From Trichosphaerium sp. ATCC 40318 (lineage: Eukaryota; Protista; Tubulinea), in the NCBI GenBank assembly GCA_038496445.1, contig JALMLS010000215.1:124001-188000 (forward strand): a stretch of DNA of 64,000 nucleotides, given 5' to 3'. The position numbers and the translations under genes were made by a program. Below are positions 5,357 through 55,447 of the stretch, piece by piece (the stretch's first letter is position 1; the number at the start of each line of letters is the position of its first letter). The notes below the pieces were generated by a model. It had not been told where the DNA came from. It worked only from the letters and a program-made list of their open reading frames with translations, and did not search any database.

Positions 5357-6101
5357 GACACTCAAGGAACAAGAACACTCAACTTTTGCATTTCTTTTAA
5401 ATTTTTTTTTTTGCAAGTCTAGAGGTGCTCTTTTACTAGCTTGTCAGTGATGATATCTTTTATCACCTGTCATAGTATTAGTAATAGGGCTGAGATTATA
5501 CTCTTTAAACCTGATCGTCGTAATTGGCGCGAAGGGAAGGCTTGCAAAGAAAAGGAAAACCAAAAAAAAAAAAACAAAAACAAAACAAAAAAAATAATAA
5601 TAATAAAAAACCTGTTGAGTGTTACGCGTGTTTCAATATCATTGTCAAGTATTGTCGCTAGATATATACGGTTATAGATATATAGTTTAGTATATAATAT
5701 AGTATATCTATATATGTTTAGAAAAAGTTTTACTCGCTTCTAAAGCCACGTTTTTGAGGATTATTGAAAAAGATTCCAACGTTTTGTTCTTTGAAAGCTG
5801 CTTAACTTTTTCTCAAATCTCGAACTCCTTTACAATACTTGCTCAACCCTCGCTGTAACATGATGCTAAAGGAAGTTTGTAGTAAATTGCGTCTAACTAA
5901 ACGCTTACACTACCTCCACATTCCCAGTAAAACAGTCATGTTGTAGCTCATTTTAAATAAAAATAAGCGCCATAAAAACCATAAAAAGCACATCACGCAT
6001 TGGGCGAGGTGATGAATAGCACACGCGAAAATTCGCGACCTGATTTTCCATTTTAACCCCCCATTACGTAATATATCGTAGACACGGAAATAACAATTGC
6101 T

Positions 6102-7304
6102 ATGTCGCTAAAACATCTCCAATGTGAAGAATACATTAAATCTATTCAACACGTGCCACCAGAGACGCTTACACAGATACTGAGTCACTTGGGCAAGTGG
6201 GAGCGAATAAGCACAACAAGAGTTTGTCATTTATTTAATAATGTCATTCGCAATAACATTGGCTTTGACAAACTATTATTGTATGTACCAACAGATTGTC
6301 ATGTTCTGAAAGGCAGTCCATTACTTAAAAACACTCGCATTATTTGTAAACCCGAAGCTCTATCAGAAGCGGACTATTCTTGTCTTTCTGGTGTTAACTC
6401 AATAGATGTCTCATATTCAAAAATAACAGATTCAGGCGTTCTTGATTTGCTTGATGGAGGAAGGCATACGATCAAATACATTGATTTGACAGACACACAA
6501 ATAACAGATGTTTCATTAAAAGCACTCAGAGGTGTAAAGGAAATTCACCTTGCGAGGTGTACGAATATTACTGTTCAAGGTATCAAGCACCTCAATAATG
6601 CACGTGATATTACACTCCAGAATCCTTTGGATTCGTGGCTTCAACACCTCGGCAATCTAAACAAAGTTGACATAAATAAAGGGGAATCTGTTTCAGATGA
6701 AGGAATCAAAGCATTAATACATGTCAATGATCTAAGCTTGAGATGGTGTAAAATGATAACAGACTCAGGCTTGAAGCAATTGACTGATGTACGGCACCTT
6801 GGAATCTTTCGCAGTTCTATGATTACAAGTATACCTTTGGCTAATCTCAGACACCTTAAAATATTCATGTGTGGTAATATCACGGATGAAGGTTTGAAGG
6901 AGTTGATAAATCTTGAGACACTTCATGTCGTTGATTGCCCGAAGATTACAAGCATAACATTGGCTAATCTCAGACACCTTAGAATGCGCAAGAGTGATAT
7001 TACAGGTGAAGGTTTGAAGAAGTTGGACAATCTTGAGACACTTGAAATCAATAATTGTGATATGATTACAAGTGTACCATTGACTAACCTAAGACACCTT
7101 GACCTATTCTTATGTCATGAAATTATGGATGAAGGTTTGATGAAGTTGATCAATCTTGAGACACTTAATGTCGTTAATTGTTACTATATTCATGCTGATT
7201 GTTTAAAACACTTGAAATCTGTCAAGCATATTTCTGCCTCTCAACAAGGCCATACTAATCCTATAAAATATGAAGCTGAGAAATTGGGTATCACTGTAAA
7301 ATAA
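6102..7304 (+). CDS. Intronless F-box-like + leucine-rich repeat protein
   Basis: N-terminal VPPETLTQILSHL..RVCHLFN (F-box-like); repeats such as LRHLxIxxCxxITDEGL. Confidence 0.85.
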   Translation: MSLKHLQCEEYIKSIQHVPPETLTQILSHLGKWERISTTRVCHLFNNVIRNNIGFDKLLLYVPTDCHVLKGSPLLKNTRIICKPEALSEADYSCLSGVNSIDVSYSKITDSGVLDLLDGGRHTIKYIDLTDTQITDVSLKALRGVKEIHLARCTNITVQGIKHLNNARDITLQNPLDSWLQHLGNLNKVDINKGESVSDEGIKALIHVNDLSLRWCKMITDSGLKQLTDVRHLGIFRSSMITSIPLANLRHLKIFMCGNITDEGLKELINLETLHVVDCPKITSITLANLRHLRMRKSDITGEGLKKLDNLETLEINNCDMITSVPLTNLRHLDLFLCHEIMDEGLMKLINLETLNVVNCYYIHADCLKHLKSVKHISASQQGHTNPIKYEAEKLGITVK

Positions 7305-18573: not shown

Positions 18574-21040
18574 ATGGCAACAAAGTCTAGGAGCTCCCGT
18601 ACAAGAAGATCTGCAGCTTCAAAAGAACAAGCCAATAGCTTGTTTATCGAAGCAAAAGAAGCGCACGAAGCGTACCTCTTCGAAGAGGCTATTGGCTTAT
18701 ACAAACAAGGTATCTAAATACGTCAGTTTACTTGGCTTACTTGTTTAAAAGCCATAAAACTACAACCAAAGGCGGCTGATACATACAACTGCCTTGGAAA
18801 CGCTCTCAGGTTCGTTAACGATTAAGCCTGTCAGTGTTACGTTGCTAAATTGTTTTAACCGTTAGGGATGGCCCAAAAGATTACGACGGAGCGCATGCGG
18901 CGTATTTAAAAGCCATAAGCATCAAACCAGATTTGTACACGGCGCACTTCAACTTGGCACTGCTTAGAGAGAAACAGGTATTCCCTAGCGAACGTGTGCT
19001 CAGTTGTAGTGTTTTCAACTGTTTTAAAGAAATGTTGTATTCGCGTTTTTCATTTTACTGTCTCTGTGCCGCTTCCAAACATTCGTAGCGCGTAGGACAA
19101 CATAAAGTAACTGAAAGAACGGTAAACTACATCGTCGTTAAACTAAACTCATAAAGGGAAACTTGGAAGCTTCAGAAGTAGCTATACGTAAGGCCATTGA
19201 GTACAATCCAGGATTTGGGATGGCCCACCAGCGTTTGGGCGATCTACTTCAACGTACAGCACGAGGTAAGACAGTTTTTCTTCTGTAAATATATACAAAT
19301 TTTTTTTGGTTAAACGCTGACACGTACTCAGGTGAGGAGGCTTGTAACCACTACGGAAGCGCTCTGATGTTAGATCCTACTGATTCAATGCTTTATTTTA
19401 AGCTTGGCATGGCCAAGTTCAGTCTGAGTACGACACCTTTGTAAGCCATGGAAAAAATTAACTTATTTTTAGAAAAGTACGACGATGCTATTGAAGCGTT
19501 TAGAAGAGGCCTGAAATTGAGTCCAAACCATATACCAACATTAATAACTCTTGGTGTCGCATTAACAGTCCGTCAAGATTATACAGAGGTGAGTTAAGAA
19601 GGTTTTATTTCGAAAAGAAAAGAAACGATTAACATGTCAAAAATCAATAAGAAAAAAAGAAGATTGTTCTTTCAAGTAAAGTCCTAATAATTCTAGGCGG
19701 TTAAAGTATATAAGCGTGTTATACAATTAGATAATACTGTTAATGTATACACAAACTTGGGTACAGCGCTAATCGGTCTAGAAAAATGGAAAGACGCAAT
19801 GAAAGGTAATTTTCGAATTTTTTTTTTGACAGCAAAACTTTAACTTTTCTTAGTGCTCCAGTTGGCAATAAAACGCAATCCTAAGGATACAGCTGCACTA
19901 ATGAACTTGGCTACTGTACTTGTAAAACTAAATCAATGGGATAAAGCTGTTGAAACGTACAAATACGTAAGCAAACAACTATTACTTATCATTTCTAAGT
20001 TGGCTTAATTACTTTTGTTGTAGGTTCTTCGTGTTAATCCTAACCTATCAATTACTGTCGCCATGGCGCTTGGAGATGGTTATTCAGAACGTAAAGAGAT
20101 AGAAAGCGCTATTGCTCAGTACAGTGCAATACTAAAAAACAGCTCAAGAGTTCGTATGAGCCACGCTGCACTAGAGAAGCTCTACGCAATGTACTCAGAA
20201 CGGGAAAGTATAGAAGATCTGGTACGTCTTTGAGCAGATTTATCAACAGTTAAATTGACTCTTGTATTCAGGAGTGTTTTTGCGAAGAGCTGAGCAAGTC
20301 TTCCCCAGTCTCACCAATTTATTATTCCATACTATCACTACTCTACAAAAAGATGAACAAATATGATAAAGCAATAGCGTGTATAACATCAGCAATACGG
20401 CTTGATCCTGGTACGATTCAGTACTATAAATACAAAACCGTTTACTTCATAATTTTTATTTCTTGTCTTTGTTTTTCGTCCATTTGTCTCCTGGTGCTTT
20501 GTATCGCGTTAATAAATGATGTAGTTTCATATGAGCACCGCGTAGACAAAGGGTTATTATTTACAATCAAAGAGAACTGGGCATTGGCTGAGAAGGAGTA
20601 CAGGCATGCTATGAACCTTAGCGTGGATAACAGCGAGATTGCTGTGAAACTGGCAAGCGTTCTTGAGCATCAATCGAAATACACAGAAGCTAGGTGAGTT
20701 ATTGGTTTTTTTGACACTTAGAATTCAATGAATTAAAAAGCTGCATAACGTGTACTCAAATTGATTGTTTTGGTTCTAAATGATCTGTCGTAGAGCGCTG
20801 TATTCCTCCGAGGATATGGATGAGCAAGTTAATCGGTTAGACGCTATTTTAAAAGAGGAGAGGGCGAAAAACAAACAAAAACCAGCAGAAAATACTACGC
20901 CTTCAGCTTCAACGACAGAGCCATCAAAGTCATCAGATATGTTACCTCTTTCTCATTGGGTAGTACTTGGTGGTTTAGCCATCGGATTGGTTGCACTATT
21001 TGTAGTTACCAGGAAGAAAACACCAAGTGCACCTTTGTAA
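18574..21040 (+). CDS. TPR-repeat protein with C-terminal membrane anchor, multi-exon
   Basis: Repeated TPR motifs (AIKLQPKAADTYNCLGNAL; AISIKPDLYTAHFNLA; AIRLDP); terminal TM WVVLGGLAIGLVALFVV followed by RKK. Confidence 0.85.
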
Positions 21041-21160
21041 ATAAACTAACAAACAAAAATGTTGACCATGTCGTTTTTATCACAAAAGTCAATTTTTGTT
21101 CTTGTAAGGTTCATTGCTTTTTCTCGCACTCTAGAATTCTCTTTTTTTCTTTATGTTTTT

Positions 21161-21360
21161 GGGAAGGCCGCCATCAAGGGCATCTACAGGCGAAGTAGGC
21201 CTGTAGCACCGCCCTTGGGCATCCTGTATTCCCCCAGAAATTCATTGTAACGGGTACAGGTGGAGCTATCAAACTACACATTATTTTCCTTACTCACTAG
21301 CAAATTGTGTGAGCTTTGAAAGGATTACTATGTGTAGGTTGACGTACTTAGTTTAAGGCT
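21161..21360 (-). ncRNA. RNU12: U12 minor spliceosomal snRNA split by an intron (exon 1 ~21360-21348, intron 21347-21297, exon 2 21296-~21161)
   Basis: Spliced 5' end AGCCUUAAACUAA|UGAGUAAGGAAAAUAA matches conserved U12 (human AUGCCUUAAACUUAUGAGUAAGGAAAAUAA). Stem IIa GUGUAGUU-UGAU-AGCUCCAC, Sm-like site AAUUUCUGG, long 3' stem-loop III with loop CCUACUUCG (human CCUACUUUG, the 65K-binding loop). Spliced length ~149 nt. Confidence 0.93.
21297..21347 (-). other. 51-nt major-class-like spliceosomal intron inside U12 snRNA
   Basis: GTACGT donor, GCTCAC branch-like motif, CTAG acceptor, same style as mRNA introns in this window. Its removal restores the contiguous U12 5' motif. Confidence 0.88.
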
Positions 21361-21777
21361 AAGCGATATGTAAAAAACTGAACTTGAAAATAGCGCTGTG
21401 GCGTTTATTTGTTGTGGTTTTGATGGTGAAAGACTGAAAAAAAAAAAATGACCACATAATGCCTGCAACGTATTACTCATGCGCGTTGTGTGATTTGTGG
21501 CGGTTGTCCGCGCCAAAGAAAATTGTGTGTATTAAAATACAACGCAGAGGTATTGTAGTCCATTAACGTAGCGTGAAGGAGCGTAATAAGTATGTTTTAG
21601 TCATTTTGAACGAACTATCTAGCTAGTGGGTTCTTATAGTCCTCGTTTGCGTAGACTAGATAGTAGATGTTGCTAGGTGGACATTAACAGGACATGTATG
21701 AGTGTTGTGAAGAAAAGCCACGACTGTTTTTTGCCAGTTCAGGTTTTCTGTTTTTTTTTTGAAAGACATTATTCACA

Positions 21778-22860
21778 ATGGCTGTCACTATTAGGCGTAT
21801 CCGCGTAAGTTTAAATCACTATACTCCTTATTGCGTCTAAAATTCAATATTAGACAGAAGATTTATTCAGAGTACAACACAGAAACCTTACATGTCTTCC
21901 TGAAAACTATCAAATGAAATATTACTTTTACCACATTCTAACATGGCCACAACTTTCATATGTTGCAGAAGACACTAAAGGACGTATTGTTGGATACGTA
22001 CTAGCAAAAATGTACGCAACAGATAAGAGCTACATACTATTTTGCCATAATCGCCGTTAATGCGTCGTTACCTCTTGTAAATCTCACCACCGTGCTAGGG
22101 AAGATAAACAAGATGAAGATGATAAGGATTGGCAACCACATGGTCATATTACGTCTATTGCGGTCATGGGTTCCTATCGTAAACTGGGTTTAGCTACAAA
22201 ACTCATGAGACAAGCTCGTATCCTAAACAGAAAGTTTTTTCTTTCCATTTTTAAACCCATCATGATCTCTTTTCGCTTATTTACGCCTTGACAACACAAT
22301 CAGAGTATTCAATGGTTGAATGTTATCATGCTCATTATGTATCTTTACATGTGCGCCGGTCTAACCGCGCAGCGCTTCATCTATACTCTATCGCACTTGC
22401 CTTTGAGTACGTATTTTTTTTGATAAGAATTTTTTTCTTACCATCACCCGTTTTGCCGTGTTATTTTGTGCGTTATTAATTCTGTATTTTAGAACGTATG
22501 ACATTGAAGAAGGTTACTACGCTGATGGGGAGGATGCCTTTGCAATGGTAAAGTGGTTTTTAGTGAAAATTGAAACTTTTTTGTAAAAACATTTATTATG
22601 TTCTTTTCTCCGCATAATCGTAAATTTTAAAACTCTCAATAACGCCACCAATACCGAGTATATTTTACATATCATCTATCACAGTAGAAACTAAAACACG
22701 CAATTTATAATGACATTAAATTGGTTTTGTTTCAATTTTTTGCTTTATTTTTAAATCGTTGTGTGCTCACTATCTTCTCTTCTAGAAAATGATTTTACCA
22801 AAAGATCCTATGGAAGTATTTAAACACATTGATCGCTCACACGTTCAAATACCTGAATGA
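21778..22860 (+). CDS. NAA10: N-alpha-acetyltransferase 10 (NatA catalytic subunit, Ard1), 6 exons
   Basis: [90 protein letters not shown]. Confidence 0.97.
22218..22303 (+). other. U12-type (minor) GT-AG intron in NAA10
   Basis: Donor GTATCCTA; branch CCTTGAC at 22286-22292 with the A 12 nt from the acceptor; no pyrimidine tract after the branch; splicing keeps the frame (..RQA-Q-YSM..). Confidence 0.8.
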
Positions 22861-36601: not shown

Positions 36602-37510
36602 TCACTTTAATTTGTTTGCAATGATATAATCAAGACCACCAACAACAGCAGCAACTTGAGCAACAATACAATCTTCATCAGTAACTTTATCACTGTCAGG
36701 ATAGACCTCTGTAGTAGTGGTATACTCAGCGCCAGTGAAGCTCATACAAAGTTGGTATATCTTTGCATCACAAACAACAACACCTTCTTGTTGTAGAGGA
36801 TCACCACATATACCACCTGATTCATCAGGAAGAGCAATATGAGTGACTTTCTTAACAGACTGAATGATTGCTTTCTGGAACTCTGGAACAGGTTTTTTGT
36901 CATCACCAACTGTATAGAACCCGTCAGGAATAGGTCCTGTTTCGACTTCTGTGCCATCACGTGCTGCTTTTGCTGGTCTGAATTCAGTGTTATCTGTATC
37001 CGTGGTCTCATGCAAATCGAAATGAACCAATACCTCCCCTAAAGGAAGAACTGCGTTCATGACAAGTTCAGCTTCTTCGCAATTTTCAGGTTTTTTCTTT
37101 GGAGAAAATGAGCGATTTGGGTCTACTGCTTTTGGGTTCCATCTGTTGATTGTCTCGAATCCCCAAGGGCTAATACAAGGTGCTACGACGATATTGAAGT
37201 GTTTGCTGTACTCTAAAGCTTTCGTTTCCAAAAACCTTACAGCGCCAAGTACGCCGCTCGTCTCGTAACCGTGTACACCTCCAGTAACGAGTAGTGTTGG
37301 TTTTTTGGCGTCCCAAGAGCGTGTTTTAGCCAAGTACAACGGATAATCTTTTGAGTAAGATAGTACGCCGTATTTCTCAACGTCAAACGATTTTTTCCAC
37401 TTCTCGACGCGTGAGACGACGTGTTTCTCGTATGATCGTTTTATCACTTGTTTTTCTCTCCAAGCGATCTTTTCAGCTTCTCCCCATCCTTTTTTAACGG
37501 CAGACATCAT
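36602..37510 (-). CDS. M14 metallocarboxypeptidase (succinylglutamate desuccinylase/aspartoacylase-like), intronless
   Basis: LVTGGVHGYETSG, NRWNPKAVDPNRSF, HFDLHET, TTTEVYPDS. Start uncertain (ORF is open to 37621). Confidence 0.88.
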   Translation of the reverse strand: MMSAVKKGWGEAEKIAWREKQVIKRSYEKHVVSRVEKWKKSFDVEKYGVLSYSKDYPLYLAKTRSWDAKKPTLLVTGGVHGYETSGVLGAVRFLETKALEYSKHFNIVVAPCISPWGFETINRWNPKAVDPNRSFSPKKKPENCEEAELVMNAVLPLGEVLVHFDLHETTDTDNTEFRPAKAARDGTEVETGPIPDGFYTVGDDKKPVPEFQKAIIQSVKKVTHIALPDESGGICGDPLQQEGVVVCDAKIYQLCMSFTGAEYTTTTEVYPDSDKVTDEDCIVAQVAAVVGGLDYIIANKLK

Positions 37511-37936
37511 TGAAAGTATTGTTGTTAGAAATGCAATCAAGACTATTATTAATGGTGTGTAGCACAAATAACGATAGAAGCTGTGTGTTGCTTTCTTGTC
37601 AGGCATAAAGGACTTGGTCAAGGCGAGTTATTCGCTTTTTTGGCTGATTTTCTTGATTGCGGACTTTCACCTGCTCTCGACGGCCTCAATACACTTGTAA
37701 AGCGCAACAACAAATAAAACTAACCGACGTGGACTATTTCTCACATTTCACCGTTTCCTTGTCTTTTCAAATCGCATACTTGCCACAAGTGTACGTAAAA
37801 CAGCGTGAGGAACGCAACGCAAATATTTAGGATGCGTAGTACACAAGTTACGTGAACTTATCGCAGAAACCCACTTCGCTTACCCGATAACTTAAGTTGT
37901 TATTAATGCCTGTATAACATATAGACGTTACACACA

Positions 37937-53986: not shown

Positions 53987-55447
53987 ATGGAAGAAAAAGA
54001 TAAATCCGCCCTTGCTACGCTGCCAATTGAAGCAATAGTACATATACTCAAACAAGGGACGTATACACTTCGTTCAGCACAGACATGCCATCTTTTGCGA
54101 GATATTGTCAACACCCACATTGGATATGGTCGTATCTTAGTTAAAAGTGAAAAAGAGATTCATATGCTTTCTGGGAGCCCATTACTCAAGAATACAAATA
54201 TTGACTTGGAGTATTACAAACCACAAACAAATGAGTACTGTATCAAAGCATTAGCAGGTGTACATACAATCAACTTGAATTTCAAAACAGTAACAAACAA
54301 GGGTATTGCAGCATTGGCAGGTGTACACAAAATTAGCTTGGCAACTACCAATGTGACAGATGAAGGTTTAAGGTCATTGGCAGGTGTACACACTATTGAT
54401 TTAAATTCTTGTAAATTCATAACAGACGAAGGTGTTATGGCTTTAACAGGTGTACATGAGATTAACTTGACAAATACAAAGGTAACAGATAATGGATTGA
54501 AGGCACTGGCAGGTGTACACACTATTGTCTTGAATGATTGTTATTCAATAACAGACGAGGGAATTAAGGCATTGGCAGGTGTACATCACATTGATTTATT
54601 GGGTACGAAAGTAACAGATGAAGGTCTCAAGGCGTTGGCAGGTGTACACACTATCGACCTATGCTATTGTAGATCAATAACAGATAACGGTGTAAAAGCT
54701 TTGGCAGGTGTACATAATATTGGGTTAACAAGTACAAATGTAACAGATGAAGTTTTGAAGGCTTTGGCAGGTGTACACACAATTAATTTGCAGCAATGTG
54801 CAATAGCAGGTTCAGGTATCAAAGCATTGGTAGGTGTACATGAAATTGACTTGTCACAAACAAATGTAACAGATGATGTTTTGAAGGCGTTGGTAGGCGT
54901 ACACACAATTGACCTATGCTATTGTAGATCAATAACAGATGATGGTATAAAAGCTTTGGCAGGTGTACACACAATCTATTTGAAGCAATGCAAATCAATA
55001 ACAGATTCAGGTATCAAAGCGTTGGCAGGTGTACATGAAATTGACTTATCAGAGACAAATGTAACAGATGAAGGTTTGAAGGCGTTGGTAGGCGTACACA
55101 CTATCAACTTGTACTATTGTGAATCAATAACAGACAACGGTGTAAAAGCTTTGGCAGGTGTACACACTATTGATTTAAATTTTTGTAAATCAATAACAGA
55201 TGAAGGTGTTATGGCTTTAGCAGGTGTACATGAGATTAACTTGACACGTACAAAGGTAACAGACGATGGATTGAAGGCACTGGCAGGTGTACATACTATT
55301 ACACTGTGTAGTTGTAGATCAATAACATATGAGGGTATAACAGCATTGGCAGGTGTACATACTATCAACTTTCGTAACATGCAACATATAGCAGATGATA
55401 ACCGTCTCCAAGCATTGGCAGGAGTAGTAAGGATAAACAGATACTAG
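53987..55447 (+). CDS. Intronless F-box-like + LRR protein with 18 LAGVH repeats of 21/22 aa
   Basis: LATLPIEAIVHIL..QTCHLLR; 18 GVHxIxL units. Confidence 0.9.
   Translation: MEEKDKSALATLPIEAIVHILKQGTYTLRSAQTCHLLRDIVNTHIGYGRILVKSEKEIHMLSGSPLLKNTNIDLEYYKPQTNEYCIKALAGVHTINLNFKTVTNKGIAALAGVHKISLATTNVTDEGLRSLAGVHTIDLNSCKFITDEGVMALTGVHEINLTNTKVTDNGLKALAGVHTIVLNDCYSITDEGIKALAGVHHIDLLGTKVTDEGLKALAGVHTIDLCYCRSITDNGVKALAGVHNIGLTSTNVTDEVLKALAGVHTINLQQCAIAGSGIKALVGVHEIDLSQTNVTDDVLKALVGVHTIDLCYCRSITDDGIKALAGVHTIYLKQCKSITDSGIKALAGVHEIDLSETNVTDEGLKALVGVHTINLYYCESITDNGVKALAGVHTIDLNFCKSITDEGVMALAGVHEINLTRTKVTDDGLKALAGVHTITLCSCRSITYEGITALAGVHTINFRNMQHIADDNRLQALAGVVRINRY

Follow-up and report, generated by a model that had tools for sequence, protein, structure and literature searches.

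The 64-kb stretch of DNA analysed here (referred to below as the window) has on its minus strand the layout of a U12 snRNA gene, in which two exons are separated by a short insert with the signals of a U2-type intron. Exon 1 (positions 21360-21348, 13 nt, AGCCTTAAACTAA) corresponds to the U6atac-pairing 5′ region (AGCCUUAAACUAA), with the 5′ end of the RNA placed at A21360. The intron (21347-21297, 51 nt) is of the GT-AG, U2 type and ends with CTAG; its 5′ splice site reads GTACGT (21347-21342), its branch sequence GCTCAC (21314-21309) contains a branch A predicted at 21310, 13 nt before the 3′ end, and its 3′ splice site is TAG. Exon 2 (21296-21161, 136 nt) starts with TGAGTAAGGAAAATAA and includes the branch-recognition sequence GUAAGGA (21293-21287, GTAAGGA in DNA) 3 nt after the intron, stems IIa and IIb, an Sm-like site (21242-21234, AATTTCTGG; AAUUUCUGG in the RNA) and stem-loop III (21206-21184) with the loop CCTACTTCG at 21199-21191 (CCUACUUCG in the RNA). 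The spliced RNA would be 149 nt long versus 200 nt for the unspliced form, and the intron falls between U12 nucleotides 13 and 14, separating the U6atac-pairing 5′ region from the branch-recognition sequence. The 12-mer GCCTTAAACTAA occurs once in the window; this copy is on the correct strand, sits right in front of a GT and lies 51 nt ahead of the U12 body. Both intron borders follow CTA plus a purine (ACTAA|GT at 21344-21351 and GCTAG|TG at 21293-21300), a direct repeat of 3-4 nt that could be due to chance or could mark an insertion by break repair.

On the plus strand, a gene for a GNAT (NAA10-like) protein, with its GNAT domain in exon 3, is arranged head to head with the U12 gene at a distance of ~400 nt. 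RNA contigs of the GNAT gene begin at 21761-21765, and the ~400 nt in between (21361-21760) are the presumed promoter region shared by the two genes; no promoter elements were identified in this interval. Convergent with the U12 gene is a plus-strand TPR gene, whose last intron lies at 20694-20793 and is followed by a stop codon near 21038 and an AATAAA. Farther away, the window holds a match to the TPP riboswitch aptamer (5411-5554, plus strand; 52.5 bits against a gathering score of 54.3, E = 2e-7), around which Pfam gave no hit on nearby ORFs. It also contains an ORF without introns (36602-37621, minus strand) that encodes an M14/AstE-AspA-type metallopeptidase; nearly all of its nearest Atlas clusters are bacterial, and gene transfer is possible. 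Two single-exon LRR ORFs are located on the plus strand (6102-7304 and 53987-55447), of which the former alone has an F-box; the latter, the only LRR ORF searched against the Atlas, has mostly giant-virus proteins in its nearest clusters.

At gathering thresholds, Rfam returned no match in the whole 64-kb window. When E-value thresholds were applied instead, the U12 model (RF00007) matched the genomic copy at 21303-21161 with 39.2 bits (gathering score 53) and an E-value of 4e-6 on 801 nt, or 3.2e-4 on the whole window; the alignment covers exon 2 and lacks the 5′ stem I. The effect of removing the 51 nt was evaluated with a profile HMM derived from 33 of the metagenome U12 genes, which scored the intron-removed sequence at 68.3 bits versus 48.8 bits for the genomic one (a gain of 19.5 bits). 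A natural truncation control is provided by the metagenome contig L007, which starts exactly at TGAG and receives 65.7 Rfam bits, while a full-length copy (L006, identical at 140 of 141 positions) receives 96.1. By this estimate the missing 14 nt would be worth about 30 Rfam bits, and the spliced form of our gene should score near 65-70 bits, above the gathering score of 53, a value extrapolated from the truncation control rather than obtained in a model run; another metagenome U12 gene (L003) scores 69.9 Rfam bits, close to this estimate. Of the individual U12 features, GUAAGGA is present and can base-pair with UCCUURAY, the branch site of U12-type introns, and the Sm site and stem-loop III with its CUACUU loop, both common to the metagenome U12 genes, are in place as well, while the U6atac-pairing and stem I element, GCCUUAAACU(A/U)A right before UGAGUAAGG, appears only once the 51 nt are removed.

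The metagenome collection was obtained with a scan whose pattern was anchored only in exon 2; it yielded 57 loci, 45 of them real U12 genes. All 45 are intronless at the corresponding site and carry xTGCCT[T/C]AAACT[A/T]A directly before TGAGTAAGG. A scan of the metagenomes for U12 genes with a GT..AG insert of 34-64 nt at this site gave no match. Exact-protein look-ups with five ORFs, the majority located at or next to the U12 gene, turned up no second assembly of the organism. Over its whole length, the intron-removed sequence can be aligned to 37 distinct metagenome U12 genes; the closest share at most 75% identity with it, and there is no close relative among the 45. After intron removal it also has the composition of the RF00007 family, with GCCUUAAACUAA at the 5′ end, GUAAGGA, stems IIa/IIb, the Sm site and stem-loop III with its loop as given above. 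It differs from this family in that an intron follows nucleotide 13 and the genomic form scores below the gathering threshold, and in that the 5′ end of the RNA reads AGCC rather than AUGCC and is one nucleotide shorter; it is also distinct from the U12 of Physarum polycephalum, which reads GCAAAGAA. Two metagenome contigs from sister samples (L007:1-141 and L017:1-72) both begin exactly at the TGAGTAAGG of U12, that is, at the position of the intron in our gene; their shared start probably reflects a break in the assembly of a multicopy gene. The first-pass annotation, made from the letters of this stretch, had recognised U12 hallmarks here and had proposed that the gene is split. All of its coordinates, sizes and sequence elements were found where it had placed them, the Rfam match to exon 2 (E = 4e-6) supports the U12 identity, and the HMM, the alignment and the truncation control agree that removal of the intron restores a full-length U12.

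The insert has the properties of a major-class intron, namely GT-AG termini, a GTRNGT-like donor, a CTNAC-like branch sequence within 10-40 nt of the 3′ end and a length usual for the locality (51 nt versus 49-100 nt for the RNA-confirmed neighbours). Among these neighbours are the introns at 21805-21853 (GTAAGT, 49 nt), 22012-22098 (GTACGC...CTCAC...TAG, 87 nt) and 20694-20793 (GTGAGT, 100 nt), and the insert resembles this U2-type set, the intron 22012-22098 in particular, with GTACGT and CTCAC in place of a U12-type donor. The fourth confirmed intron, at 22218-22303 on the plus strand (86 nt), is of the U12 type and reads GTATCCTA...CCTTGAC...CAG. A U12-type classification of the insert itself was considered and rejected, as its donor is GTACGTCA and not (A/G)TATCCTT; despite this non-minor donor, an UCCUUUCAA element occurs 20 nt from its 3′ end. 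We likewise rejected the possibility of a repeated ‘introner’ element, the insert having no second copy in the window. Its removal would fall to the major spliceosome.

RNA data consisted of three small unstranded runs in the form of assembled contigs. We take these runs to derive from RNA, since the GNAT gene appears in all of them free of its three introns. One of these introns is the U12-type GT-AG intron 22218-22303, which is skipped in the contigs of all three runs and whose branch site CCTTGAC is complementary to GUAAGGA. Minor splicing is active at this neighbouring gene, and the intron would be a substrate that needs the U12 encoded in the window. More generally, a genome with U12-type introns needs a working U12.

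For the U12 locus itself, the key observation comes from contig 6 of run X2 (512 nt). This contig covers 20801-21300 and then continues with 12 letters, TTTAAGGCTCCC, that disagree with the genomic sequence. These letters are the reverse complement of GGG followed by AGCCTTAAA, so that on the RNA strand exon 1 is joined to exon 2, and the junction is continuous with 360 nt of the 3′ flank of the same locus. The GGG in front of AGCCTTAAA is non-genomic (the genome has CTT ahead of AGCC) and fits a non-templated addition at a capped 5′ end, consistent with a start at A21360. The alignment places the four letters preceding TTTAAGGCTCCC on the palindromic CTAG at 21297-21300, and of the 3 differences counted for this contig 2 were listed; we infer that the third is a C>T at 21297, giving TTAG, the reverse complement of the CTAA of exon 1. 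The evidence for the spliced junction is thus one assembled contig with 13+3 letters past the joint, one junction letter being assigned in this way. A second contig (X3 contig 8) has its end precisely at 21296, where one would be expected if spliced and unspliced forms branch in an assembly graph, an agreement that we regard as only suggestive. Compared with the window, the X2 contig has 3 differences in the flank and the X3 contig has 10 (within 461 nt), and exon 2 is free of differences in both; the contigs come from a strain or species 0.6-1.7% divergent in the flank.

The same two contigs cover the region downstream of the U12 gene (minus strand, 20407-21160, the lower bound being computed from contig extent) without a break from exon 2. 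They run more than 700 nt past U12 and through the last intron of the convergent TPR gene, here in its unspliced form. The captured RNA is probably a U12 read-through transcript, antisense to the TPR gene, or a merge of the two convergent transcripts, and not the mature 149-nt snRNA. The proposals of the first-pass annotation that the insert is a major-class intron and that it is spliced both find support, the former in the resemblance to the intron 22012-22098 and the latter in the exon 1-exon 2 junction that it had suggested looking for in RNA and that X2 contig 6 carries at the exact borders. Overall, we consider it very probable that the locus is a real, expressed U12 snRNA gene with a spliced 51-nt U2-type intron.

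The following course of events can be proposed. The transcript would start at A21360 and run divergently from the GNAT gene, and the major spliceosome would cut out the 51 nt, joining AGCCUUAAACUAA to UGAGUAAGGAAAA and producing a canonical 149-nt U12. Only after this step would the U6atac-pairing 5′ end adjoin the branch-recognition sequence, as it does in other U12 RNAs. The unspliced precursor should be inactive, because its two functional elements lie 51 nt apart and because the intron is predicted to pair with the start of exon 2 (see below). The minor spliceosome would then probably depend on the major one for a working U12, which would amount to a built-in hierarchy with the major spliceosome acting first and the minor one second.

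This dependence holds only if the locus is the sole functional U12 gene. It would not hold if the cell were supplied by an intronless U12 elsewhere and the locus were a pseudogene or a spare copy, dispensable even if it is sometimes spliced. Such an arrangement is made conceivable by the multicopy nature of many snRNA gene families and by the scope of our search, which was the 64-kb window; yet transcription of the locus begins at a defined 5′ end, its RNA is spliced and its functional elements are all intact, as a result of which we consider a spare copy unlikely.

A further property of the precursor is that its intron is complementary to the opening 29 nt of exon 2. The intron arm involved (21343-21309, minus strand) includes a UCCUU (within 21324-21318) that faces the AAGGA of U12. 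The duplex has an energy of −25.2 kcal/mol versus −13.8±2.8 kcal/mol for dinucleotide shuffles, only one out of 2000 of which was as good, while the plain local alignment score is weaker (it was reached by 63 of 5000 shuffles, p about 0.013). The predicted fold of the 200-nt precursor has an energy of −71.1 kcal/mol (z = −4.3) and contains pairs of GCUCAC with G|UGAGU and of UCCUU with AAGGA. If formed, this predicted hairpin would mask the branch site, the 3′ splice site and the U12 branch-recognition sequence at the same time. The complementarity may be a functional mask of this kind, or it may be the trace of a local inverted duplication, an origin that can be read from it because the intron is not repeated elsewhere in the window.

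A functional role of the pairing would make the precursor regulated or self-sensing, in that either the hairpin mask or a mature U12 snRNP bound to the UCCUU of the intron would let the rate of splicing tune the supply of U12. The excess over dinucleotide shuffles, the fold z-score and the two predicted pairings are all in keeping with such a mechanism, albeit the weaker result of the plain alignment and the possibility that the complementarity is a mere relic of how the intron arose speak against it, and overall we find regulation of this type quite improbable. The remaining alternative, a presence/absence polymorphism in which the X2/X3 strain is intronless, its contigs copy DNA and the insert in the window is perhaps a recent, gene-disabling one, draws on the 3-10 flank differences that mark these contigs as another allele or strain, and an intronless allele in that strain would give the same contig sequence; we nevertheless consider it very unlikely in view of the full and locally typical splice signals of the insert, the exact restoration of the consensus upon its removal, the end of X3 contig 8 at the position expected of a spliced/unspliced branch point, the use of U12-type introns by a genome that requires a functional U12, and the absence of differences in exon 2 against 10 in the flank.

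Returning to the reading of the locus as an expressed and spliced U12 gene, the origin of its intron deserves a comment. The usual account of introns in snRNA genes is reverse splicing close to the active site. This origin fits poorly here, since the major spliceosome does not contain U12, and the case points instead to an origin of the intron at the DNA level. Taken together, the observations could be combined in a single scenario, in which the split gene is the sole source of U12, the intron is an inverted copy of the branch-recognition region and not a product of reverse splicing, and a self-masking hairpin, or a decoy branch site that gauges the level of U12, determines how much minor spliceosome is supplied. 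The scenario in its entirety appears doubtful, and we give it little weight; if it were true, every gene with a minor intron in this organism would rely on a step carried out by the major spliceosome.

A practical consequence concerns genome annotation. The first-pass annotation had warned that covariance-model searches could miss split genes such as this one. For threshold-based annotation the warning holds, because the genomic copy falls under the Rfam gathering score, and pipelines that apply this score would call U12 absent although the genome clearly uses U12-type introns. On the other hand, it does not extend to all searches: exon 2 is still found with an E-value cut-off, and a single-family cmsearch run in this way would probably find the gene.

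To our knowledge, no intron has been described in the RNAs of the minor spliceosome. In the literature that we searched, with most subscription journals outside its scope, we found no report of an intron in U12 or in any other minor snRNA. Studies that surveyed minor snRNAs in hundreds to thousands of genomes make no mention of introns in these RNAs (PMC10639083, PMC11347168, PMC2396436). According to a review (PMC5855946) and to citations in a further paper (PMC2396436), mRNA-type introns occur in U6 of Schizosaccharomyces pombe and other fungi and in U2, U1 and U5 of Rhodotorula hasegawae. Introns are also present in the U3 snoRNA genes of yeasts (PMC5832005), and the named cases of snRNA and U3 introns that we found are all fungal (PMC5855946, PMC5832005, PMC2396436).

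Compared with the fungal introns in major snRNAs, the case presented here is similar in that a short GT-AG intron, removed by a spliceosome, sits in a conserved and functionally central stretch of a spliceosomal RNA. It is different in that the host is an RNA of the minor spliceosome, outside the machine that would remove the intron, and in that the intron resembles an inverted copy of the adjacent exon. With the U3 introns of yeasts it shares the placement of a spliceosomal intron near the 5′ functional region of a Pol II-type gene for a small structured RNA, although U3 belongs to a different class of RNA with a different function, and its introns establish no link between two spliceosomes. 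A link of this kind is known from the USSE feedback, in which the U11/U12 di-snRNP binds to protein-coding pre-mRNAs (U11-48K and U11/U12-65K) and steers the choice of a U2-type splice site (PMC8329584). The split U12 gene would be, like the USSE, a point of cross-control between the major and the minor spliceosome, with the difference that feedback is hypothetical in our case and that the snRNA precursor itself would be the substrate of the major spliceosome.
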